Assembly: GCA_965644495.1 (NCBI GenBank)
Contig: CBFFSA010000014.1
Location: forward strand, 275,906-339,905
Origin: Perkinsela sp. CCAP 1560/9
Lineage: Eukaryota; Protista; Euglenozoa: Kinetoplastea
Reading direction: 5' to 3'
DNA length: 64,000 nucleotides
Shown here: piece by piece, positions 19,761 to 64,000 of the stretch
Layout of the letters: each line of letters opens with the position of its first letter
How positions within the stretch are numbered: position 1 is the first letter of the stretch
Translations under genes and position numbers: made by a program
The notes under the pieces: model-generated
What the model saw: the letters and a program-made list of their open reading frames with translations, nothing else
Database searches by the model: none
Told to the model about the DNA's origin: nothing

Positions 19761-21152
19761 GGACTTGGGGCAAAAGCGATCACTCCGCTGACAAACATCC
19801 CTTTGAGTCGTGCTCTCGAACAATGAAAATCGAAGAAACGAAAAAATGAAAATCGAAACTTTTTCCAATTTCCTTCCAAAAAAATTCAAAAAAATCCGCA
19901 TTAAAGGGGGGGATCAGGGGGGTCCGTATTAAAGGGGGGGGTCACAGTAAGTGGCTTGGTTAGATTATCGTGGCCTGTACTATAGTACAGTATGTAAAAA
20001 AGTATAGAAGTAAAAAAATGGTAACCGCCTACTGTATTCGTATTTAAAATAATTTTACAAGGTGTACAAAGTCCATTCACTCAGATCTACAGTGTCACAA
20101 GAGTTCTCTCAAACGGACTTACTATACTAATTTTAGAGGGGGTGTCTTATCTTGTCGAGGGGTTTACATGTATGGAGAGTAGCGATATAAACGATAAAAA
20201 CAATCCTCTAAAAAAAATAGCACCACTTCGCGGCGCGGTATTCGTCATGCCTCAATATTGCGCTTAAGTAGCCATGTCAAACGGTTGCGCATAAGTGGGG
20301 GGACAGTAACTATCCGGAGTAACGAGTCACACGATTTCAGTTTTAGTATCTTTCCAATGAAAGGGAACCCAAAGAAGAAATATGAAAACAAAGGAATTAT
20401 CAGAACGGTCTTGAAACAGTTTGACTTCAAGGAAACGTTTTTCAATTGGAATTCAGAGAGCTGGGTTTGGATATCATCATATCAAATGAAGCTAACATAA
20501 CTTTTAAGAACTTATTTATTATTTAGCAATTTATCTTTCACGATTTCAGACCATGAAAATAATTGAGGGAAAGCTACTGGGGTGTGCCGTTAACGCAGCT
20601 AGAAAAGTATTCAAAAATAACATTCTACTGTAGTTAGAAAACGGGGGAAGAAAACGTTCTGTCATAAGAATAAAGGAATTTGAACACTTGCTCCACTTTA
20701 TTATCAATATATTTATTTAATATCTATTTATTCAACATTTATTTATTCAATATTTATTTATTTATTTATTTAAGATATAATATCTTAATAGCGTTTCAAA
20801 GTCATACGTTCGTACTTTTTATCCAACTTCTTACTATACCCCACACTTTTCCCATGCTGTTAAACAGCGGGTGGTTGATGGACCAAGCCAATTAAGCTTT
20901 ACCACAATGAGACAGGTCACGGATATTTCAAGCAATGCAAAGAAAGTTCAGGCTAAAGCAGTCCACTGGGACACAGACCCGGGTAATTACCCATTTACAC
21001 GGCAGGGGCATGTTATTAAGTAGGGGGGATAGTAGATGATAAAAAACATACTTTCATCCAAGACTTTTGACACGTAAAATAGCAGTTTTTCAGTTTGTGT
21101 CGTAAGTGGTGCAAAGGTCTCCCATCCATCTTACTGCAGGAACACTATTAAG

Positions 21153-21893
21153 TCAGCTTAGTATAATTTTTGTATTTCGAACATCCATATAGAGTATATG
21201 TAAAGTCTTAGGCATAAGACTTTTCTTCACCTCACCTTGAAGATCTACATTACCGTACAGGCGTAGAGCTGACAGGCCTGGAGGTAACGAGTCTAATTGT
21301 ACCCAACCGTCGAACTGGTTTCTGTGAATAGCCAGATTCCACAGACGTGGTGGGAGACAACGTAGTTCCGGAGTTCCTGTAAAGGCATTGCAGCCCATGG
21401 CTAACGTCTCGAGCTCTGGAGGAAGATGACTTAAATCAGCGATTCCTGATAGATCATTCGTCGTTAGACATAGGTGAAGTAAAGTTTTCGGTAAACAAGT
21501 AAAATCGATTGACCCAGTGAAAATATTATGAGCGAAGTTAGCGTCCATGGTTTGTGGCGGTAATTCATTGAGAAGTAACTCCCCAGTAAGCTGATTGTTA
21601 GAAACAATAATTTGGAGCACTGAGCATGGGAGATATTTTAAATGGATATGGCCGTACAGTTCCATGTCAATGCCCCAGTCAAGCTTAGATGTTTTATTTC
21701 CCTCATCACATATCACATTCTTCCACTCACATGCTGCCGTGTTGGTATTCCAAGAGGGATCGGTATTTCCGACGTCTTTGATAAAATTTGCAAGTTCGTA
21801 TTCTTGTGGGACGTTGGCGCTACGAATCCGACCGCGACGTGATGATGGAATGTCCTCAGCACACAGAATGTGTAAAAAAGTCCTGTGAAACAT
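21153..21893 (-). CDS. LRR protein, intact paralog (start likely MFHRTFL at 21893)
   Basis: AEDIPSSRRGRIRSANVPQEYELA family motif, W....ACEW..V.CD cap, LRR repeats; the longer ORF start overlaps the upstream gene and is probably not used. Confidence 0.85.
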   Translation of the reverse strand: MFHRTFLHILCAEDIPSSRRGRIRSANVPQEYELANFIKDVGNTDPSWNTNTAACEWKNVICDEGNKTSKLDWGIDMELYGHIHLKYLPCSVLQIIVSNNQLTGELLLNELPPQTMDANFAHNIFTGSIDFTCLPKTLLHLCLTTNDLSGIADLSHLPPELETLAMGCNAFTGTPELRCLPPRLWNLAIHRNQFDGWVQLDSLPPGLSALRLYGNVDLQGEVKKSLMPKTLHILYMDVRNTKIILS

Positions 21894-22144
21894 GGAGTGT
21901 TGTATACTTTGCAAAGAATGACTTTGAAACCATAAGGATGAATACTTTTTAAGTATGTATGTTAAGTATGTACTGTATGTAATTACCGTATGTAGTAATG
22001 TTTGCTTCAGAAAATATATGAGCCTTAGACGGTGAATATGGCTTAATAATTGGGTAAATGAGGATTTGAATTTGTGTCCTGTAATACATCCATCCAAAGA
22101 ATCCTCCGAAGCTTTCTGTATTAGGGAATGTACTGCGATGTCGA

Positions 22145-23326
22145 CTACACAATAATCCAGTTCTTCTCGAAGAGGGACCTCATTTCGTTTGGCTGCTTGC
22201 CCACAAACCAACGGGATGGAGCGATCACGCGTTTTCTAGGGGCTTCGGAGAGATAAGCACCCCACCAGCTAAAAGAGCTGTTTGCTATAATAAGGTCATG
22301 ACAGTGAGCCATAGCTGCCATTTCGACGTAGTCTTCTTCATCGCTTAGGGCCACTTGTAGCCCACTAATTGTCTTCATGGCCCCGGATTCGTATTTCCAC
22401 GTGTGAGTGGAAAACATAGAGCGAAGCATAGAGCAGAACAATTCCCCATATATTTTATCATCACTAAAAACAATGATACGTAGAGTGTTGGACACAAAAT
22501 CGGGTGTATGAAGGAGCTCGCCATAAAGCTGACGTAGCGCTAGGTCGTAATAATTCTGGAACGTTTGGATATGAAACTGCTCTGGAAGCTTCAGATAGTC
22601 TCCACGACGGATATGAATGCCCAGAATGTGGTACGGTAGCTGCGCTTCCGAAGACTCTAATGGAGTCGTGGTCTCACACTTGGAGTTGCACAGACGATGA
22701 AGAACTTGTAATCCCTGTCTCCGTATCGACACTGGAAACAACAAGCGCGAAATTTCACTATGAAAATCTGAAAAATATGCGGAAGATTGAAAGAAACCAC
22801 GAAGCACATGTGTGGAAGATTGCCCTTTTTGCTTCTCTGATAATTGAATTGGTTGCGGAGTCGATTGCTCGGCGATGACATCACATTTGGACAAGTCCAT
22901 TTCATGTATCGTCGGAGACGTAGGAGAGGGGAGGAGCATCGAAGCTCCGTCGTGTTTGCGAAAGTAGTTCGTTTCTGAGAGAGACTCGAATTGTGTTCGC
23001 CAGTACACTGGACGCGGCTCAAAGCAGCTGTCACTGCAGGGATAGTGTGGAATGTAAAGATCAAGTTCGTTTCGTAGCGCTGTAGCAATCCCGGTGGCAA
23101 GTATGAACATTTGATTTCCCAAACCTCCAACAATAGGAGCAACAATTTGAGGACGTGTTGGCGTTTTTTGTGCGCAAAACCGTACAGTGGAGCGAGTATG
23201 AAGCGAACGGAAAGAACGGACCAACATGTTTTCCCTCAATATTACTCTTGAAGAACACCTCCGAGAATTCATTCCGCTGAAATCTAGAAAATAGCACAAC
23301 ACTATCCTACTCTCTTTTGATAACAA
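22145..23326 (-). CDS. FUT1: Alpha-1,2-fucosyltransferase, GT11 family, probable mitochondrial presequence
   Basis: GGLGNQMF, GFFQS, HIRRGDYL, VFSDD, IIANSSFSWWGAYL; Arg/Ser-rich MLVRSFRSLHTRSTVRF. Confidence 0.92.
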   Translation of the reverse strand: MLSKESRIVLCYFLDFSGMNSRRCSSRVILRENMLVRSFRSLHTRSTVRFCAQKTPTRPQIVAPIVGGLGNQMFILATGIATALRNELDLYIPHYPCSDSCFEPRPVYWRTQFESLSETNYFRKHDGASMLLPSPTSPTIHEMDLSKCDVIAEQSTPQPIQLSEKQKGQSSTHVLRGFFQSSAYFSDFHSEISRLLFPVSIRRQGLQVLHRLCNSKCETTTPLESSEAQLPYHILGIHIRRGDYLKLPEQFHIQTFQNYYDLALRQLYGELLHTPDFVSNTLRIIVFSDDKIYGELFCSMLRSMFSTHTWKYESGAMKTISGLQVALSDEEDYVEMAAMAHCHDLIIANSSFSWWGAYLSEAPRKRVIAPSRWFVGKQPNEMRSLFEKNWIIV

Positions 23327-31681: not shown

Positions 31682-33550
31682 TTTTTGAAAAGTAATATTT
31701 TAAATATTATTTTTCAAAAAAATGCCTTCGTATACATATACATGTCGTACGACGTTCGTCTGTCAACATCTCATGTTGACAGATGTTGTACATGTGACTG
31801 AATAGATGTATGACATACATCTATTCAGTCACATGTACATCTCCGTTCGTCAGAACGAAACGTATGACGTTTCGTATGACATGTACATCTGTTCTATACA
31901 TGAGTCCAAATAATTTTGACTATTTTGTGGCTGCCTTTCGTAGATATACACGAGTGCAAACAGTACACAATACAGTAGAAACGTCGTAAACAATCCGATA
32001 CGTACTCTATCCAGTATACAATTATCCAGTACGTGCAGTACAACAAAGAACTGCAACAAGAAATTAGGATGCAAATCTCACTTTCGCCATTTTTATCATT
32101 CTTGGGAAGAACGGGCTGTTGAAAACATGAAAGGTTTGGTCCTGCAGTACCACAACAAGTCAGATACTACACGACGAAGTTAGTGAAATGGCCATCAAAC
32201 TGAACAAACGGCCACTAAGGTGTTTAAAATAAGTTTCACCAAAGAGCTTGGAAGACAAAATTTTACTATAAAGAGATGCAACATAAAAGCAACGAAGTTG
32301 TAAAGCAGTAAAGGCAAAACAATTGAGTTGTAAGATTGAGTCCCAAGTTTGAATGAACACAGGAAAGACTCGATTATTATTAGGTTTCCAGCACGAGCTG
32401 AATAGTGATATTTTTCCCAACTCATGGATTCTTGCGGTGCTCCTTTTTAATAATCATTTCTTTTTAGTGAAACTCTGAAACTATCTACAAGTATTTAAAA
32501 TTTTTGGTAGGTACGAGGATCTCCAATTGCTCGTCACGATTTTCTGCACTGCCTTCTAAAACTATTCTGTCTTCTTATTGCCCAGCGAACAGAAGATGTT
32601 CGATGCGCTTCAGTCATGCAGCAGGAATCTATGCTAAATGAATGTGGAATGCACGTAGTGAATAGCTTATATTCACTCTTGTTCTCCACTCTTGTTCCAC
32701 ATTTAGTCGGGTCGATAATTTTCTGACGCGAAAGAATCTTTCGAAGTCATGGTCGACGTGTGGACGAAGAATTTCTTCCTAAAAAACGAAGTGTTAACGC
32801 AGAAACCTAGGAGAGCTTCATGAAACTGATTCAGATTGTGATTATCCTCTAGATCTTTAGAGATATAGTAGAGGTACCGTACAACATAAAAAGTGTTCTG
32901 GTCCGTTCCTTATTGAGCCAACAGTGATCGCCTAGTGCTCCTCCCTATCATCCGAATTCTACCAAAAACACTCATAGAATGTTAAAATTAAAGGGCATCG
33001 TGTAAAAGGGTGTCCCTAGGGACAATACTGTAACCCGGACGGTCTGAATCACGACTAGATCTAATCATGAATAGACAGAGAAAGGAGATACAGAGGACAA
33101 AAAAAATAAGATGACAAAAAATGAAGATGATATAAAAAATACCTTCGTCCTGCACTTTCATCCAACACTTTTAACTCGTACATTCAATAAGCCAATTTTT
33201 TCAGTTTGTGCGTAAGTGGCGCAAAGGTCCCACATTAAACATATCAAACGGAGAGTACGATTAACCACTCGCATTAGGCGATCATCTCAATCATGCATGT
33301 CGTCAACTGACTATAATTTTCGTATTTCGAGTATCCACAGAAAGTATATGTAAAGTCTGAGGCATAAGACTTTTCTTCAGCTCACCTCGGAGATTTTCAT
33401 TATGATCCAACATCAGACTTCGCAAACCTGAAGGTAATGTGTCCAACTGTACCCAGCCTTCAAATTGATTTTTATGAAGCATCAGATTATAGAGAGTTGG
33501 TGGGAGACCACGTAGATCCGGAGTTCCCGCAAAGGCATTGCAGCCGATGG

Positions 33551-34163
33551 TTATGATCATACGCTCGTGGCGCAGAGATACGTCTCTCTGTGTGACGGCC
33601 GATACCATCGGCGCATGACCCGCATACGACGGGTGTCACACAGAGAGTGGAGTGCGAGGTAGGAGACGAGACGCCCATCGGTCATGCTACAGCACGTATA
33701 GCCATGGTTCATGCTGCAACACGGTCAAGCCGTGGGTTCATGCTGTCAGATGGTCTATCGTGGATCATGATGCATCATGGGGAGGTCCGTTACCGCCGCA
33801 CTCGCTACAGCATGTAGGGAGAGAGGCGTGCAAGTTCGCATCCCCTATACACGCATACAACGTGTCCTCCCGCTGTAGCACGCCCAGTGGTCCTCAAGGG
33901 AGGCCACCATGGCGCATAGCTCCCGGGAGAAGAAAGCACGAGAAGGAGAGAGCCGGGGAGGGAAGAAAGCTCACTCGAAGAGAGCGAGCCGGGGAGGGGT
34001 GAAGAGTGCGAAGTGCGTCCCCTACTTCCGCGACAAAGAGGGACAGTTTCAGCTAGCCGTCAGCCGGAAACGGGCATTTAAAAGTAAGAATACGCCCGTT
34101 TCCGGGAAAAGAAAGGAAGGGCTAGCAAAATGTACCAACAAGGTACAGAAACTGTATCTTTAT
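33551..34163 (-). mobile_element. SL-RNA-headed non-coding element, copy 1 (613 bp)
   Basis: Starts ATAAAGATACAGTTTCTGTACCTTGTTG|GTACA; ends in stem-loop + ATAA; absent from the intact paralog. Confidence 0.85.
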
Positions 34164-34230
34164 GCGAGCGTCACGAGCTCTGGAGGAAGATGACTTAAAT
34201 CAGCGATTCCCGATAGTTTATTCGCCGTTA

Positions 34231-34804
34231 TTTTTTGTTTATCATGCGCTCTTTGGCGCAGAGATAATCCCCTTAATGCGACGGCCGATGTCATCGGCAC
34301 ATAATCCGCCCACAACGGATGTCGCCAAAGGGGATTCGACGCGGACTCTGTCGGTAGAGAGGTCCAGACAACTCGCCTCTCTTTACGCAGCCGGAGGGGC
34401 GTACTGCAACCGACTCGGTCCCAGTCGGTAGAGGTGGTCCAGGCAACTCACCATCTCTTTACGCAGCCGGAGGGGCGCACTGCAACCGACCGCTGCCTCG
34501 CGATAATGCAAGGCAGAGTCACGCCCGGTGGTCCTCAAGGGAGGCCACCATGGCGCATAGCTCCCGGGAAGAGACAGGCGCGAGAAGAAGAAAGCCGGGG
34601 AGGGAAGAAAACTCACTCAAGGAGTGAGCCGGGGAGGGGTGAAAAGTCGGAAGTACGTCCCCTACTTCCACGACAAAGAGGGACAGTTTCCGCTAGCCGT
34701 CAGCCGGAAACGGGCATTTAAAAGGAAAATGTATGCCCGTTTCCGGGAAAAGAAAGGAAGGGCTAGCAAAATGTACCAACAAGGTACAGAAACTGTATCT
34801 TTAT
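34231..34804 (-). mobile_element. SL-RNA-headed non-coding element, copy 2 (574 bp)
   Basis: Same 28-nt head, ends ...GATAAACAAAAAA, flanked by a 5-bp direct repeat (CGTTA 34226-34230 and 34805-34809); internal ~73-bp tandem duplication 34352-34490. Confidence 0.85.
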
Positions 34805-35715
34805 CGTTACAGGTGAAGCAAAGTTTTCGGTAAACAGGTGAAATCGATTGACCCAGTGAAAATATTATGAGCGAAGTTAGCGTCCATGGTTTGTGGCGGT
34901 AATTCATTGAGAGACAACTCCCCAGTAAGCTGATTATTGGAAACAAGAATTTGGAGCACTGAGCATGGGAGATATTTCAAAACAATAATGCCGTTTAGAG
35001 CACACTTTCCCCAACGCAACTGCGACACATTATCTCCCTTGTCACATATCACATGATTCCATTCACATGCTGGCGTGTTGGTATTCCAAGAGGGATCGGT
35101 ATTGCTGACGTCTTTAATAAAGTTTGCAAGTTCGTATTCTGGTGGGACGTTGGCACCACGAATCCGACCGGGACGTGACGACGGAACGTCCTCTGCCATA
35201 CGTATAATATACATGTATGAAGGAAAACTGTGATACATAGCGCAATCGGAATAATACGTTTAGGGGAACAGAGAATCAAAGAAAAACGTAAATAGACTCA
35301 TGTATTTGGTGAAATAACGTGAATGAAATTTACCATCAAAAATATTTGCAAAACGAGCTCCTCAATTCGGAAAAGAATATAGGAATTTCCTGTACTGAGT
35401 GATATAAAATTTTCAAAAAAGAAATGTGTCTTGCGGAGCGCAATGACTCCAATGATGGAGTTTTCAGATCCCTCAACCGATACCGTTCACATGCTATCTT
35501 TCATTTACATGATGTTGCTTTGATAATCGAATGGAGATTGAGCATCTCCAATGTACCGCATTTATGTGAGACGTTTTTACAATGAATCCGACCAGCACGT
35601 GTTGTGTTCATTTAAGCAATGCCCTCAGCTGCCCAGAAAATGAAGTATCTTACTATAGGGAACATCTAATGCTAATTCGAATAATATTATAAATTATTAT
35701 GTGACAGGGCAATGG

Positions 35716-49375: not shown

Positions 49376-49460
49376 TTCTGTACCTTGTTGGTACATTTTC
49401 CTTTAGTTCATCTTTTCTTTCCCCGGCAACGGGCATAGTCTTACTGTTTTGTATGCCCGT
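49376..49460 (+). mobile_element. Third, divergent SL-headed element 5' fragment, cut by a TA-CTGTACCCCCCCTAG MITE end
   Basis: TTCTGTACCTTGTTG|GTACATTTT...ACGGGCATA..TATGCCCGT homologous to the 34-kb copies. Confidence 0.8.
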
Positions 49461-52856: not shown

Positions 52857-54416
52857 CAGGGGTGAAAACCTCGTGGTGGGGGGGGGTCTAAAATTCGTAA
52901 AAATTATCCAATTTTGGAAAGTAATAGCGCATTCGAGAGCTCTCACAGAGTTGTATGTTTTAGCACTATTTGCGGCCTGTGACTCAACATGAAACGATGA
53001 GACAAAAAAAATCATGATTTTTTTTCTTGCCCAAATTTACTTTTTTTTCAGTTTTTAGCTGTTTTTCAGTCAATATTAGCACTATATGCCCCAGAAACGG
53101 ATTCGTTCCCGAACCTCACGTAGTGTACTCAGCGACAGGTCCTATTCCTCCCCCGCACGGGTGATACCAAGTCACCGTATGCTTCTTGTCTCAGATTATC
53201 TTGAGACAGGGTCCTATTCTCGGACAGCCCAAAACTTCGGCGTCCACGAAAATACAGTAAAACGTCTTGTGATACGCTATGAGAACACTGGAGACATGGA
53301 AAGCTCTCCTATTTCACGCCCATCTCCTGTCAGTACCCCTGCGCTGCACGAAGCAGCTATCCGCCTCATTGATGAGGGATACCGTGACCTCCCGTACGGG
53401 ATTGAGAACTGGTGTGCACTCCATAGAGTTGTGCTTTCTCTTGGATTTCAGTGTTCAAGAGCAACTTTGGTTAACGCCATGAAGAGCCATGGTATGATCA
53501 TGCGAACTTTAAAAAGAAAGCCCGCACTGACCGATGAACACAAGAGGAAACGAGTGCATTTTTGTTCTGAGATGCTCACTTGGTCAGATACCCAACTGAG
53601 ACAAATTGTTTTCTGCGATGAGAAGAAGTTCACTTGCGGTAGGGGACGAAACAAAATTACTTACCTTTGCCGGAAGACTGACCCCGCCAAGGAACAGCAG
53701 GGAGAGCTAGAACCTTGGTATGGAGGGAACGGCGTCATGGTGTGGATGGGGGTCAGTTTAAATCATGGATTTCATCTACACATTTTTCCCTCCCACGACC
53801 CTTCCGGCCGAAAAGTAACTGTAACAGGGGATGTTTTCAATGATGCCATGAAGAAGCGCAAAGGACTTTTAAATTATTTGAGGCGCCACCCATCTGGGGT
53901 CGTTGCAATGGATAATTGTCCTGTTCATAATTCTGCGCGAACAACCTTTCGCAACGAAGGTATTAATGTACTCTCTTGGCCTGCAAAATCCCCCGATTTA
54001 AACATCATTGAAAACCTTTGGGGGACCATGGACAGGATCAAAAATGATCTTCGACCCAAGAATCGGGCTGAATTAGTATCGGCCATTGAGACAGCGTTCG
54101 AAAGATTACAATCAGAACGCAAGCAAGAATGTATTAACACGATGAGCAGTTTCCGCAAGCGTTGTCGCATCGTTATTGAGCGAAACGGGTCTTCCTGTGG
54201 GTATTAAGGGTAATTTTTGACCATTTTTTACAGTTTTTAAAATTTGCAAATCGTGTTTTTGACCCTTCCATCAAAGGGGGGCACCCCCCTAACCCCCGCA
54301 AACTGCCTATCTTAAAACATACAACTCTGCGAGAGCTCTCGAACGCGCTATTATTTTCCAAAATTGGACAAATTTTACGAATTTTAGACCCCCCCACCAT
54401 GGGATTTTCACCCCTG
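52857..54416 (+). mobile_element. Full-length Tc1/mariner transposon, intact ORF 53086-54207
   Basis: ~105-bp imperfect TIRs starting CAGGGGTGAAAA within TA runs; HTH, KPALTDEHKRKRVHFC, VFCDEKKF, MDNCPVH, WPAKSPDLNIIENLW. Confidence 0.95.
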
Positions 54417-55099: not shown

Positions 55100-57330
55100 T
55101 CAGACGTAAATCTTAAAGACAGTTGACTTCCTGTGCCTGGAGATGAGTTTGTTATTCCAAATCGATTTTAACTCGTGTATTTTAGTCTGTGCTGACTTTA
55201 TGCGTGATCGAATTTCAGGTCCCAGTGAGGCGTCTTCGTCAATAATAGTGCCTAGATAGGTGAACTGCTTTACTTGCTCTATTTTTACTCCGTGTAAAGT
55301 AAAGTCATCTGAGTAGTATTCTACCGCATTTTTTGGTTGGATGATTTGCAATTTGGTTTTAGACGTATTTATTGCTAAACCCCAATGTTCAAGTGTTTCA
55401 GCCAGCACGTTCGCTGATTGTTGCAGTTCTTTTAAGTCGTCGCTCCACTGGGCAATATCGTCCGCGTAAGACGATAGGCCAATAACGTCTTCACCTTGTA
55501 CACGGTTTCCTCTGCATGAACGCCCGCTGGGCAATCTCCATCGAACTTTGACACCAGAATGTGCTTTTTGGGAGGCAGCTCTAATAATACAGTCCAGGAC
55601 TCCGTTAAAGAGGATGCAGCTCAGCGCGCACCCTTGCTTCACACCCGTCAGAATATCAAATTTAGCACTTGTTGATCCATCTGTTGCCTTAACTGCTGCC
55701 GTAGTCCCGTCGTATAAAGCTTTTATCAGCTCTGCAAGGTGCCCACATACATGTATGTTCATTTTCCCTAGAACTTCCCACAAGACGATTCTAGGTATTC
55801 GGTCGTACGCTTTTGTGAGATCGATATAAAGTATATAAAGTGGTGTTCCTGTTCTATGTGCCTCCTCTGTAAGCCTCCGAAGTATAAAAATTGAGTCATC
55901 CGTGGACCGACTGGTTCTGAATCGATTTTGAGATTCCAGTAGCCGTCGGTCGATCCTTGGGGTAATTCTTGCGAGAAGAGCACTCGTTAGCACCTTAGTG
56001 GCGATATTGATGAGCGATATCGGTCTGTATGCATTTGGATCGTCAAGTTTTCCTGCTTTGATGCCCTTATAAACCCCCCACAGCGAAAAGTCACCCCCCT
56101 CTAACTTTTCAGCCAAGTGTCCGTTTGAGCTCATTTTTGTTGCATTTTGCTGTTCCCAACACAAAGACTTTGCGCGTTATAGCATGGAACCAAGGCTCTC
56201 AAATGCGTGCATCCGATAGATGGATTATCACTTCCTTCACATTTTTCAAGAGACCAATTTCTCACCCTTTAACAAAATAAATATTCCCCCCCCATGAGAA
56301 ATTCAGTTATTTTTGTCCGTTTTTGCTGATTTTTGTTGCGAACGAGAGATCTCGTTCTCCTAGCAAAGATCTTTGCCGCTATTTTTTAATATTGACCCAC
56401 TTGTGCCCCCTGGCCGCGGAGTGTTTGTTTTCTTAAATTAGTGTGGTATGACGATGCAAAAAAATAGAACCAAAAACAATTTTCTTTTTCAGTTTCTAAA
56501 ATGATCTAAAAATGGCGGGAACGTGTAGATCTCAGAATTTTGAACGAGAAAATGATATCTTAACCCCCTTAGGCCCCTTCAAGCAAAAAGTAAAGGGTGA
56601 CTTATTCGCTGTGGGGGGTTTATATGCAGGTAATCTGGGAATGTTTCCATGACTTGGGCATATCTACTTTTTCCCAGCAGAGGATGATGAAGTCCGCAAG
56701 GCGAGCAATAGTGGATTCACTTGCATATTTGAATAGTTCCGGTCGTAGGCCGTCTGGGCCTGGAGATTTAAGGTTCTTAAAGGCTTTGATATACCCGGAC
56801 ACCTCGTCGGCTGTCGGAGCGGCATTGTTTTCCCTTTCTTCCGATTGTCGTGTCGCGAGTGGTATCTCTGAGTGTTCAAAAGATTCAAGGTCATGTTTAA
56901 CCATTGAAAGATCGAACTTAGTGCTGTTAGTTTTGTGGATCATTCGCAAGTGTTTTGCGTGTTCTTCAACAATTTCTCGTGGGTCTGAAATAGACTTTTT
57001 ATCTGAGTTCGAAAGTGGGCAGTTCCCGTAATTGGGAATCTCATTGAGGCGTGAAAGGCGTTTTAGCGTTAGGAACATATTATGTTGGAGCCCTCTCCTT
57101 GCTTCCCATTCTAGTCTTTCGGTCTCTTTTTTGAAGTGATCCTTTTTTGCTTCTCTGCAGGCTTTGTTGGCAATGTATCTCGCTTTCCTGGATAGTTCTT
57201 TGGCGTCATCCTTATCGGCAAGGCTCGCATCCCTGATCCGTTCAAAAGCATTTTTCTTATTCTGTACTGCGCTCAAAGCCGCTTCCGTTATATTCTGGAG
57301 CAAAATTTCGATTTCGATCAGAGAACGGTG
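55100..57330 (-). mobile_element. RTE-like non-LTR retrotransposon RT fragment, split by a MITE
   Basis: KSPGPDGLRPELFK, YRPISL, IDLTKAYD, GVKQGCALS, YADD, FTYLG; removing the MITE restores ITCIYKGIK in frame. Confidence 0.92.
56072..56620. mobile_element. 549-bp non-autonomous Tc1-family element with TA TSD
   Basis: TIR AACCCCCCACAGCGAA.AAGTCACCC; internal blocks match 42415-42480 and (inverted) 16380-16730. Confidence 0.92.
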
Positions 57331-60100: not shown

Positions 60101-60582
60101 GGGGGGAGGTGGGGACTCAACTGGCCACGTTAACAACGTGACATTGATTGTTTTTGTTCTATGCAGGCGTGCTTCCTTTTATCTGTGTTTGTGCGTGTGA
60201 ATTATCTACGATATGTTTTGGTACAATTTGAGAGTAAGATTGGATTATTCATACTTGTTTATTTATATATGTTTGTTTATTCATATATGTTTTCATGTAT
60301 ATGTTTCCAGGAGCCCCTCGGCGTGGATTTCTGAATACTTATTCTTGTTATATTACTTTGACATTTCATAGAAGGTTCAGTGAGCCCTCGCCGTGAATTT
60401 CTTACTCTGCCCCGGTTGTGACATGTAAACTTGAGTAAGTAATTTTGGTTTCGCTTATATCTGTAGAAAAAATACTCAATACTATTTCACATTAGTAACA
60501 ATTTCTTTCACGTTATTTCACAGAAAATTTTTCTGTGGGTGGGTGCCGGCGGTACCCAGTCGTCAGTTTTATTTACCAAGTG

Positions 60583-60600
60583 AGTTTCTGTACCTTGTTG
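60583..60600 (+). other. SL exon 3' part fused to a 5' UTR
   Basis: AGTTTCTGTACCTTGTTG directly followed by 36 nt that upstream (60496-60531) follow an AG. Confidence 0.85.
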
Positions 60601-61311: not shown

Positions 61312-64000
61312 TCCTATCCTATCCTATCCTATTAGGCTGACTTGCGTCGGCTGAAAGTACTACTGCTTCGTTTTTCGTGAAAACAATTTTCTCTTAGGTG
61401 AGTCTTCTACCTTGCGACCCACAATCTTGTGTAACTCCCTTGACCCTTTACGCTCTTCTCTCGCTTCCTTAACACATTCCGCTTCCTGGAGTGATTTTCG
61501 GTCTTTTGATGACCCTGTTCCGGTAGATGGTAAAAGCGAGGAACCCTTTTTGGGTGCACGTTCCTCTGCAGAAGTAGTGTATCCTCGTTTGTTAGATGCA
61601 ATGGGTATTGTGCCGTCGTTTGCCGGGGTCTTTCGTGTCGGGCGAACGGAAAGACGCAAGTTTTTAGATTCACGTCGTTGAGAGTCTCGAGCACTCAATG
61701 TCTTCATCCTCTTTGTCAACTGGGAAGAAAGAGGTTTCCGTGAAGCAGCGAGAGCCAAAGCGTCAGCCTTGTCATTGTACGCATTTCCGTTGTGGGCCTT
61801 CACCTTACAAACGTAGATTTCAATATTATTGCTTTGAAGAATACGAATCTTTCGATCTAAAAATTCAAGAAGCTCACCATTCGCCACCTTCTTGTATCCT
61901 ACTACTCGTTGCCGCATCCTTACGTGATGGAAAAAATTCCACACGTAAAAGGAATCAGTGTGCACCAACACAACTTCGGATCCCTCAGGTATTCTTTCAA
62001 GTGCCTCTTTGAAGGATTCTGCCTCAGCTTGTTCTGCTGAGTCAACGTCCAGCCTCAAAGAAGCATAATCATCATTCACCCACTTGCGCCTGATCACGAT
62101 TCCCGCCCCCCCTCTGCATTCATTTGTCGCCTTGATATAGCGTACCGAACCATCGATGTACATGTGAACTTCCTTTTCCCGAACTAGAAAAATTTCTGAG
62201 TTTTCTTCTACAAATTGCAACTCACTAATTGATTCGTGTTTCAGAGCATGGTTATACTTACTCTTCCATCGCGAAGAGGTGATCCTCTCATAGTCGACCA
62301 ACGGTTCCAGAGAAAGCCTGAGAGAGTCACATAACTTTTGCCGGTGTTGTCGGTCTTGAGAAAAAACGAGGGCTTCTTCAACCGTTATCCCGAGATCATG
62401 AAAACATTCCTCGCTAGGAGACATTTGCCTAGCGTTCTCTCTACTTTTCCACTGAAGCAATTCTCGAAACACTGTTGAGTGACGAATCATGTGACCCACC
62501 ACCTTTGCCCTGCTTACACGATGGATGGTGTTGAAGCGAGGTGTTCCACGATAGAGAGATTCTAGGGGATAACAATGACCGAATTCGTCTAGTTTGACAT
62601 GATTGCAGGCAAATCGTCTCATCATGTTGATTTCAACCTCAGTTTTCCTGACCATAGCATTCGAGATTGGTAGAGATGAAATTCCAAAAGTAAGAACAGG
62701 ATATACCAAACAATCGAACAGGCGGAGCTTAGTGGAGGCGTCAAGGGGTGAGTTCCAAATTCCTTTGAGACGTCGAAAAGCGGCCCAGGTCAATGCCAAT
62801 CTATCCTTAACTGGGGAGGAGGCACCGGTTTCTTGAAGCTGCCCCAGATACCTGTATTTGTCAACATATGGAATTTTGCCCAGGTAGGCCGTTCTGAGCT
62901 CCTTTTGTCCACCTGGAACTCTACCAAACCCCATCCATGCTGTTTTCGTCTTGCCTATGGCGATTTGCAAATTCGCTCTTTGAGACTCCTGAGCCGTGAG
63001 GTCAATCATGCGGGAGATCTCACCTTTAGTTGATGCCAATAGAGCGATATCATCAGCATAGTTGATGTCTTGTAGCCGTACCTCTTGTAACCCTCTGCTC
63101 TTTGTCCCTTGGCTCCTAAGAAGAACCCCAAAGGGCCTGCCGTCCAATGCTCGGTGTAGAATGCGGTCAACGACAAGAATGAAGAGATAAGGTGCCAAAA
63201 CGTCCCCTTGAAGAATACCAGTTGTGATTTGAAATGAAGTCGTATTTCCATAGGGGGTCCGAACAACACCATGAAGACCTCTGTATATAGACATTATGGT
63301 TCGCAGCATTGCAGGGCCAACGTGGAAAGCCTGAAGCGCAGCCTTGATAGCCTGAAAAGAGACAGAGGGAAATGCTTTCGCAAAGTCCAGAAAAGCGACC
63401 ACCAACCCAGACTTGTCTCGACATGCCCTGGTCTTCACCTCGTTAAGGAGTATTTGCGCGCCGGATGTAGAGCGTTCTGGGCGAAACCCATACTGACTGT
63501 CCCGCAGAATTGGTTCTATGGTCGGTCGAATTCGTTGCAATATCATGCAGTTCATCAACTTAACGATGCTATTAACTAAGCATATTGGGCGCCAATTTGC
63601 TATTTGAGATAAGTCGCCCTTCTTCGGGATAGGGACTTGAACTACAGTCTTCCAGCATTCAGGGGCAACCCCCGTAGCTCGAACCTCATTAATAATATCA
63701 AGCATCGCTAGCTTAAGTCCACTATGCTCCGAAATAATGCTTATCACTTCAGCCGGTATTGCATCAATTCCTGGAGCTTTATTTCGTGCAAGTTTAGAAA
63801 TTCCATGAATAAGCTCCTCTTCCGTAAATGCTCCATCTTGTATTGGAGTTGATGGTTTAACAACATCGTCGAACTGAATTTCAGAATCCCCTAAGTCATT
63901 GCTACCCATCCTAGAGAAGAAATCTCGGACTACATTCAGAGTCTCTTTGGTAGATGAAGTGTCAATGCAAAGCTTTGTCCTAGAATTGCCCTCCGGGTGA
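61312..64000 (-). mobile_element. RTE-like non-LTR retrotransposon with C-terminal RNase H; runs off the window
   Basis: ORF 61360-63909: KAPGID, WRPICL, DFAKAF, GILQGDVLAP, YADD, YRYLG; RNase H YIDGS, AEQAE, HTDS, KVKAHNG..YNDKAD; 3' hairpin plus (ATAGG)4 tail. Confidence 0.93.

Follow-up and report, generated by a model that had tools for sequence, protein, structure and literature searches.

The locus considered here raises the question of how a leucine-rich repeat (LRR) gene of the kinetoplastid Perkinsela sp. CCAP 1560/9 came to be interrupted twice by non-coding DNA headed by spliced leader (SL) sequence. The gene is on the minus strand of a 64,000-nt stretch of DNA (contig CBFFSA010000014.1, positions 275,906 to 339,905), which was analyzed as a whole and is called the window below. 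It extends from 33303 to 35238 and is broken by element 1 (el1 type, 33549-34163) and element 2 (el2 type, 34231-34807), both on the minus strand. The inserts are very probably non-autonomous non-LTR (long terminal repeat-free) retroposons, resembling short interspersed nuclear elements (SINEs) or short internally deleted elements (SIDEs), which are mobilized in trans by site-specific long interspersed nuclear elements (LINEs) of the R2 superfamily carrying a restriction-like endonuclease (RLE). The analysis drew on about 0.3 Mb of the 21-Mb genome that was read letter by letter.

The two inserts are ~575-615 nt long and non-coding, with no minus-strand open reading frame (ORF) of 80 amino acids or more within them. 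As the original prediction, made from the letters of the window alone, had stated, both begin with the same 28-mer, ATAAAGATACAGTTTCTGTACCTTGTTG, followed by GTACA. The 28-mer (34136-34163 in element 1, 34777-34804 in element 2, minus strand) is found exactly twice in the window, where none is expected by chance, and each time directly precedes GTACATTTTGCTAGCC. The inserts are 92% identical over the first 287 nt and 76% over the last ~83 nt, with unlike middles; the body of element 2 has an internal tandem duplication of ~78 nt (34337-34490). Element 2 terminates in a Y-shaped module and a stem-loop, ending GATAAACAAAAAA, and element 1 ends ...GAGCGTATGATCATAACC. The A-rich tail that had been attributed to both is present in element 2 and absent from element 1.

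Once both inserts are removed, the reading frame of the host gene is continuous, as in the empty allele, and the 67 nt between them (34164-34230, minus strand) amount to approximately one LRR unit. An intact paralog of the gene (21153-22211, minus strand) is colinear with the insert flanks over 21152-21860 and has neither insert, as had been noticed at the outset. Contigs of public sequencing runs of the same organism contain the empty sites themselves: the joint 33548->34163 for element 1 in run X2, and the joint 34230->34808, with GG between, for element 2 in runs X1 and X2. Because the flanks of these contigs are ~99% identical to the window, they represent alleles or strain variants and not the paralog, which is 77-86% identical. 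The empty alleles place the end of element 1 at 33549 instead of 33551, and the head of element 2 gains three SL bases, ACG, at 34805-34807. The element 2 empty allele reads CTTCACCTGTA-CC-TAACGGCG on the minus strand, and further out to TAACGGCGAAT (L H L Y L T A N); comparison with it shows that the element replaced the target CC, a loss of 2 nt with no target-site duplication (TSD). The element 1 empty allele reads CTCGC-A-ATCGGC, or ACGCTCGC-A-ATCGGCTGCAAT on the minus strand (T L A I G C N), and by comparison with it the insertion changed 0-1 nt of the target. Both insertions are recent, since neither is present in the contigs assembled from these other runs.

The nature of the head becomes clear from the SL gene, which is a 297-bp two-unit tandem at ~661.3 kb of contig C1. 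It has the arrangement ...GTT|AACTTTAACG + 28-mer|GTATGAGAAGCTTCGAAC..., with the canonical kinetoplastid donor and intron start, and its intron begins GTATGAGAAGC. Because the tandem reads AACTTTAACG, then the 28-mer and then the donor, the SL is 38 nt long and the 28-mer is its nt 11-38, which bears out the proposal that the 28-mer is SL exon sequence. The head of element 1 corresponds to SL nt 11-38 (its start is nt 11 or 12, one A being ambiguous with the target) and that of element 2 to nt 8-38. The SL RNA is predicted to fold into a stem-loop I across the donor and two more hairpins. The tandem adjoins a 5S rRNA gene (L077:2044-2100, plus strand, clipped by the search range), and a tRNA-like sequence was recognized by eye in the SL gene spacer at L077. 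A 5S gene beside the SL gene is a bodonid-like feature, the linkage of SL arrays to 5S genes being known from bodonids according to a reference cited in PMC2621209.

A genome-wide search for the 28-mer with at most 2 mismatches gave 504 matches, on both strands and on many contigs. The SL together with its intron is present at only 8 loci, with an uninterrupted exon in 8 of 8. Six of these have unrelated upstream flanks and a GGGGCTT end followed by an A-rich run, and are retropseudogenes of whole unspliced SL RNA (L079-L084; in assembly G000, C1:410.1k, C2:801.6k, C20:10.9k, C25:23.9k, C49:34.4k and C86:12.0k). As the SL with its intron is so rare and mostly found in retropseudogenes, more than 98% of the SL sequences in the genome are retroposed. 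The C1:661k tandem alone resembles real SL genes, so the assembly probably shows the SL array in collapsed form. A text search of the literature with the SL sequence gave no match.

The original prediction went further and took the head and the 5' part of the body to derive from the SL RNA gene, with the element exploiting SL ribonucleoprotein (RNP) assembly or donating the SL. Such an origin would explain the GT directly after the head, the pairing of SL CUGUACC with GGUACA across the junction around a UUGUU loop, as in stem-loop I of the true SL RNA, and the hairpins downstream. The sequence following the exon in the elements is GTACATTTTGC..., not GTATGAGAAGC, however, and neither body aligns locally with the SL intron, or with the 190 nt upstream of the gene, above the mean score of shuffled controls. 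The GT is probably incidental: LINEs carry the same head followed by TCTTTTG, AATTATT or TTTTTTT, and the SINE copies L075 and L019 lack the G. The putative Sm site AAACUG, which had been considered single-stranded, is base-paired, GAAACUGU of the body pairing with ACAGUUUC of the SL in 12 of 12 sequences. Retropseudogenes of the true SL RNA have another form, with an intact intron and an A tail, and the elements do not have the exon + GTATGAGAAGC...GGGGCTT arrangement that would identify them as SL RNA genes or retropseudogenes. Finally, the shifts of the head junction occur at AG dinucleotides, as described below. A derivation from the SL RNA gene is thus largely refuted and is very unlikely.

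The other alternative offered originally, that the inserts are integrated and possibly circularized SL gene repeat units, draws on nothing but the presence of SL sequence. The SL unit is 297 bp long and has a different spacer, with tRNA-like sequence and a 5S gene nearby, to which the element body is unrelated; together with the existence of dispersed copies, this means that the body is not simply the spacer of the tandem SL gene. The repeat-unit explanation can be rejected with near certainty. The head was also considered as a copy of a small RNA gene that includes its internal part, and this was discarded: SL exon nt 11-38 is all that is present, and there is no Rfam match. At both gathering and permissive thresholds Rfam detects no ribozyme or other family in the elements, but it likewise misses the true SL RNA, so this negative carries little weight. 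Hammerhead topologies and those similar to hepatitis delta virus (HDV) ribozymes fit poorly by eye, the 5' end being 4-8 nt outside the first helix.

Several rearranged copies reveal how the head was attached. In L042, L043 and L045 the SL is joined to CCCTTCC right after GCTAG of the body instead of to GTACA, so that the junction has shifted to an AG. Nine loci read ...CCTTGTTG|TTTCTGTACC (SL|TTTCTG...), with a fresh SL on an AG of the relic (nt 21-22 or nt 15-16 class), and two loci read ...CCTTGTTG|ATACAGTTTC (SL|ATACAG...), with a fresh SL on an AG within the SL relic. The stacked SLs of these 11 loci sit on relic AGs at nt 21-22 or nt 15-16, and a control with the reversed pattern gave 0. 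L055, a member of the element 1 family, has a near-full SL, from nt 3. The AG-linked junction shifts, the stacking of SL on relic and the near-full SL of L055 indicate that the head was acquired by trans-splicing. The retrocopies accordingly have the form known as a relict SL, namely a DNA-encoded SL at the 5' end with an AG-acceptor junction. SL-headed elements with poly(A) tails and the SL RNA retropseudogenes are both present in this genome, and their existence shows that leader-bearing RNAs are generally reverse-transcribed here.

A second class of SL-headed sequences (L006, L011-L015 and others, G000 C1:1.44-1.50 Mb) is ~650 nt long and non-coding and has a near-full SL and poly(A). The class includes 5'-truncated pieces of LINEs encoding reverse transcriptase (RT) and RNase H, again with near-full SL and poly(A) tails, and its members are chained head-to-tail, a new SL head following right after the preceding poly(A). 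Full SL heads (L006-L029, L080-L084) have 5' ends reading (A/G)TCTTTAACG, AGCTTTAACG or similar, compared to AACTTTAACG in the gene. The variation at the first 2-3 SL positions possibly arose where the reverse transcriptase misread the cap or modified bases of the cap-4 type.

The two inserts belong to a dispersed, recently active non-coding family with an SL head, as had been proposed. The body of element 1 gave 203 first-look candidates and at least 30 dispersed copies that are 95-100% identical, and a hairpin specific to these SINE families has 97 matches in the genome. Sequences at L078:1677-2245 and L073:6972-7537 are 97% and 91% identical to element 2, respectively. The copies of element 1 share the 3' end ...GAGCGTATGAT(CATAAC), and about a dozen of them are truncated at the 5' side, at body positions 108-259. 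No poly(A) tail or TSD was found among the element 1 copies inspected. Like classical SINEs, the elements are short, non-coding, non-autonomous and dispersed in many copies.

The target of insertion is the x5|L6 codon boundary of LxxLxLxxNxFxG units. Both inserts are just 5' of the L6 codon, and they occupy the equivalent boundary of adjacent LRR units (translation by eye, …LTANKLSGIADLSHLPPELVTLA|IGCN…). In 12 of 28 element 1 copies, a codon run L..N.[FLIMW] begins 6-9 nt past ...GTATGAT, compared to 2.6% of random window positions. The heads of the LINEs are positioned behind LP..L..L coding sequence. The elements therefore have two properties of SIDEs: they share the insertion site of an autonomous element, and they integrate almost bluntly, with a small deletion and no TSD, as the empty alleles show. 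Stacked insertions are found in the order LINE-SINE, in the order SINE-LINE-SINE (L078), and as SINEs in adjacent LRR units (the window). Such stacking fits a target whose downstream half outlives the insertion.

Across the 21-Mb genome, the search for autonomous partners with PF00078 gave more than 1000 RT candidates, and the LINEs at L073, L074, L075, L078 and L020/L023 were read. Their ORFs of 1158-1612 amino acids contain the RT domain, and their similarity to R2 proteins in the PDB covers the RT and extends into the C-terminus. The C-terminal part carries CCHC, RHN, RPD, E-x-T and K..KY motifs and aligns with a NeSL-like Caenorhabditis protein (E = 1e-7), which identifies these LINEs as RLE-type members of the R2 superfamily, with the order RT, CCHC knuckle and PD-(D/E)xK endonuclease. 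Among the named sequences compared, the nearest relatives of the RT-RLE region are NeSL-like and R2-like. The C-terminal 313 residues alone have no match in the PDB, the ESM Atlas returns unnamed zf-RVT clusters only, and no C48 protease domain was found in these LINEs.

The truncated SL head is carried by four LINE lineages (L073, L075, L078 and L020/L023), in which it is followed by unrelated 5' untranslated regions (UTRs), TCTTTTGTACTAAC..., TTTTTTTTTCTAAACTG... and AATTATTTT.... The ATG of L073 is ~45 nt downstream of its SL head, and L074 has only a 22-nt SL match near the start of the ORF. The 5' UTRs at L073:2111-2135, L023:1529-1550, L020 and L078 contain TACTAAC, the perfect yeast-type branch-point consensus, and in L073 a pyrimidine-rich stretch comes next, with CTACAG just upstream of the ATG. 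This could be an alternative trans-splice acceptor for a translation-competent mRNA.

At the opposite end, the 3' module of element 1 (33549-33650, minus strand) consists of a Y-shaped structure with GCCGAUGGUAUCGGC, followed by AUCUCU-stem-loop-AUGAU, and has three pairs with compensatory changes. The terminal motif, (A)TCTCT-stem-loop-ATGA(T/A), is common to the 3' ends of 4 of 5 LINEs (L075 is unclear) and to three SINE families. Five different stems occur at the same terminal position, namely UGCGC/GCGCA, UGCAG/CUGCA, UGUAG/CUACA, AGUGAU/AUCACU and UAUCU/AGAUA. The 3' end held in common with a partner LINE is again a property of classical SINEs, and the shared motif is likely to be the recognition element of the reverse transcriptase. 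The LINE sharing the 3' stem-loop that the original prediction proposed to look for was therefore found, to the extent that the terminal motif is shared, over ~35 nt only. The Y-shaped hairpin GCCGATGRYATCGGC was tried as part of a LINE 3' UTR and dismissed, as BLASTN assigns it to the SINE copies stacked behind each LINE. The SINE is likewise not an internally deleted LINE: apart from the stacked SINE copies, BLASTN against five LINEs matches the 28-mer head only.

In every RLE LINE examined (L073, L074, L075, L078 and L021), a SINE copy is located 10-160 nt past the ORF. The regularity of this arrangement, at 5 of 5 loci, could mean that the SINEs are the 3' portion of composite LINE-SINE units and become solo copies by 5' truncation. 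Against this, different LINE families are trailed by different SINE families, and each LINE has its own terminal stem-loop preceding the SINE head. The SINE at L074 is within a long (GT)n run after the LINE, with (GT)n on either side, and solo SINEs have clean empty sites within LRR codons. Random truncation would not give so regular a start at SL nt 11, and stacking is expected if occupied sites retain the downstream half-target. Composite units are hence a highly improbable source of the inserts.

The 5' end of the elements appears to be structured in a way that involves the host leader. In the predicted fold of the element 1 5' RNA module (34010-34155, minus strand), ACAGUUUC of the SL pairs with GAAACUGU of the body and closes a junction that holds a GUACC/GGUAC hairpin and a long hairpin, with a further hairpin downstream. 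The fold of this single sequence has z = -5.3. The three features that had been proposed from the letters, a TGTACC/GGTACA pairing, a long hairpin and a third hairpin, are all part of this fold, which three element families conserve. In each of the 12 sequences compared, drawn from three SINE families, ACAGUUUC of the SL pairs with G(A/G)AACUGU of the body; the closing pairs are all kept, two predicted pairs have compensatory changes, and the long hairpin has compensatory A-U to C-G changes. In 5 of 5 LINE heads this SL segment has its pairing partner, (A)AACUGU(AUC), 10-30 nt downstream, usually together with a GUAC/GUAC helix. The bodies of poly(A)-type SL-headed sequences have only chance-level complementarity to the SL. 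The stem-loop-I-like pairing across the head junction is therefore real and conserved. Judging from the model, it may function in protein binding or in the definition of the 5' end; the 5' end of the 28-mer is 4-8 nt outside the conserved helix.

The sharp upstream limit of the 28-mer has its own distribution. Among 53 distinct SL-bearing loci the start positions are bimodal: 15 loci start at nt 3 and are nearly all of the poly(A) type, and 20 start at nt 10/11 and are all RLE LINEs or their SINEs. A start at nt 10/11 is found in 20 of 33 RLE-type heads but in none of the 18 remaining copies with an SL head (Fisher p = 1e-5). The re-spliced subfamily (L042, L043, L045) again starts at nt 11, from which it follows that the trimming recurs after fresh splicing. 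In addition, ATAAAGAT, the first 8-10 nt of the head, is reiterated or partly duplicated at 5' junctions lacking nt 1-10 in L073, L022, L035 and L039, which suggests that the template ends at nt 11. Reiterations were seen at L073:1960-2090, upstream of the LINE head at L075, and at L022:1460-1500. Target microhomology was rejected as the cause of the nt-11 start, as the upstream flanks are unrelated; a microhomology of TA may be behind the longer head of element 2. There is also no support for a 28-nt leader donated by truncated SL RNAs of LINE-interrupted SL genes, since no such gene is present in the assembly, in which arrays may be collapsed, and a start at nt 11 is never seen among poly(A)-type retrocopies.

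The same boundary can be explained differently if capture of the 28-mer was a single or rare event and the sequence is by now inherited as a selected part of the elements, the templates being read-through transcripts of DNA copies, cut or trimmed at nt 11 beside the conserved hairpin, and trans-splicing serving as an occasional refresher. Retrocopies have no AG before the body, so splicing cannot remake the junction; the nt 11 start is sharp in spite of unrelated upstream flanks; the reiteration of ATAAAGAT without nt 1-10 suggests a template end at nt 11; and the hairpin with SL nt 15-33 is conserved. Nevertheless, the 28-mer equals the host SL even among LINE lineages with no more than 37-60% identity between their ORFs, a pattern that repeated re-acquisition fits better. 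The re-spliced subfamily starts at nt 11 again, and heads longer than 28 nt are known (element 2 from nt 8, L055 from nt 3). Inheritance of a captured 28-mer is for these reasons doubtful, although it overlaps and is partly compatible with mobilization of trans-spliced SINE RNA by RLE LINEs.

By combining these results, the course of retroposition by RLE LINEs can be outlined. To judge from its DNA copies, the element RNA is trans-spliced, so that its 5' end carries the host SL. Close to this end, the SL relic (nt ~15-33) pairs with element sequence in the predicted fold, an arrangement conserved in all RLE LINE and SINE lineages examined, and either the RLE machinery or RNP processing may trim the leader a few bases 5' of the hairpin, giving the stop at nt 11. 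The AUCUCU-stem-loop-AUGA(U/A) common to LINE and SINE would be what the reverse transcriptase recognizes. Target-primed reverse transcription would then copy the RNA from a nick at the LRR x5|L6 codon boundary. The observed outcome is a loss of 0-2 nt of target with no TSD; the 3' end is constant, and copies are frequently truncated at the 5' side.

Some observations weigh against this account. Trans-splicing and the RNA 5' end are deduced from DNA copies, and contigs of run X5, which is guessed to be a possible RNA run, barely cover the element. The retrocopy has ...TTG and not AG before the body, and the same SL|body junction could not be regenerated from it by trans-splicing. A search of the set for a master copy that has an AG acceptor and no SL gave none, as all copies extending to body position 1 have SL sequence upstream. 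The Y-shaped 3' module is absent from the LINE 3' UTRs, which leaves ~35 nt as the basis of LINE-SINE tail sharing, and no single LINE family is singled out as the mobilizer of el1 and el2.

The closest functional counterparts are the R2 SIDEs studied in the Eickbush laboratory, which are non-autonomous, internally deleted partners of R2. Like them, the Perkinsela elements are short and non-coding, use the target and the 3' end of an RLE LINE, have a structured 5' end, insert with no TSD or with a small target deletion, and include 5'-truncated copies. They differ in having a host SL relic instead of ribozyme or rRNA sequence at the head, a body with no LINE homology beyond the head and the ~35-nt tail, and a protein-coding LRR family instead of rDNA as the target. 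RIME, NARTc and SIDER depend on LINEs with an apurinic/apyrimidinic endonuclease (APE) and have poly(A) tails and TSDs. They are also non-autonomous, LINE-dependent and abundant in kinetoplastid genomes, but these elements of the ingi clade share a 77-79-nt Pr77 head (PMC5814959), whereas the head here is SL sequence.

Kinetoplastids are already known to have LINEs tied to the SL. For SLACS and CZAR, the insertion site is between nt 11 and 12 of an SL of 39 nt (PMC5814959), which leaves 28 nt to the 3' end of the exon and coincides with the boundary of the 28-mer (38 - 10). SLACS, CZAR and CRE1/2 are, like the LINEs of Perkinsela, RLE-type LINEs closely tied to the SL. The Perkinsela insertions, in contrast, are in LRR genes, the 8 loci with SL and intron being uninterrupted, and the elements themselves start with the final 28 nt of the SL. 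CRE elements are described with a poly(A) tail and TSD (PMC12278014, PMC3636483), which the present elements lack. NeSL-1 of Caenorhabditis is an RLE LINE associated with SL genes (PMC3636483). NeSL-like proteins are among the nearest named relatives of the RT-RLE region here, but NeSL-1 targets SL1 genes, and a C48 protease domain was not found in the Perkinsela LINEs. In dinoflagellates, DNA-encoded 5' SL remnants mark retroposed trans-spliced RNAs (PMC12014239, PMC5585692). The stacking of a fresh SL on the relic through an AG inside the SL is common to both systems; in this kinetoplastid the tagged RNAs are retrotransposons and their parasites, and the relic, which is trimmed to a fixed position, has become part of a conserved RNA structure.

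Tentatively, these comparisons might be taken one step further. Paired with its element-encoded complement, the SL relic may form a stem-loop-I-like 5' hairpin required by the RLE LINE machinery, the nt 11 limit may be a retained CRE-type recognition or cleavage of the SL at nt 10/11 or RNP-guided trimming, and an SL-gene LINE lineage may have been re-aimed at the LRR family of more than 1000 members, retaining the SL within its own RNA. Such a history is possible, if well short of probable.

Elsewhere in the window, a truncated fragment of a related SINE family (B/C type) is located at 49376-49460 on the plus strand and consists of a partial SL (TTCTGTACCTTGTTG) followed by GTACATTTTCCTTTAGTTC. 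A LINE ORF of 849 amino acids with RT and RNase H is at 61360-63909 (minus strand), and is adjoined by an SL-like 19-mer, GAGTTTCTGTACCTTGTTG (one mismatch, 60582-60600, plus strand), followed by TAACAATTTC. The window also contains an RT fragment of 354 amino acids (55100-56164, minus strand) and a Tc1/mariner-like DDE transposase ORF of 373 amino acids (53086-54207, plus strand).

At the level of DNA, the Perkinsela elements provide evidence that retrotransposon RNAs of kinetoplastids undergo trans-splicing and are copied by reverse transcription together with the leader, including a stacking of relics of the dinoflagellate kind; no earlier report of leader-bearing retrotransposon reverse transcription in kinetoplastids was found in the literature searched. 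They constitute a LINE/SINE system of the R2 superfamily whose target is a single codon boundary in a family of protein-coding LRR genes. The insertion polymorphism between samples suggests that the system is still active, and it likely drives the turnover of the LRR family. The pairing between the host leader and the element, together with the sharp nt-11 boundary, makes the definition of the 5' end by RLE elements a testable question, and the match with the cut site of the CRE clade bears on the evolution of SL-gene-specific LINEs.

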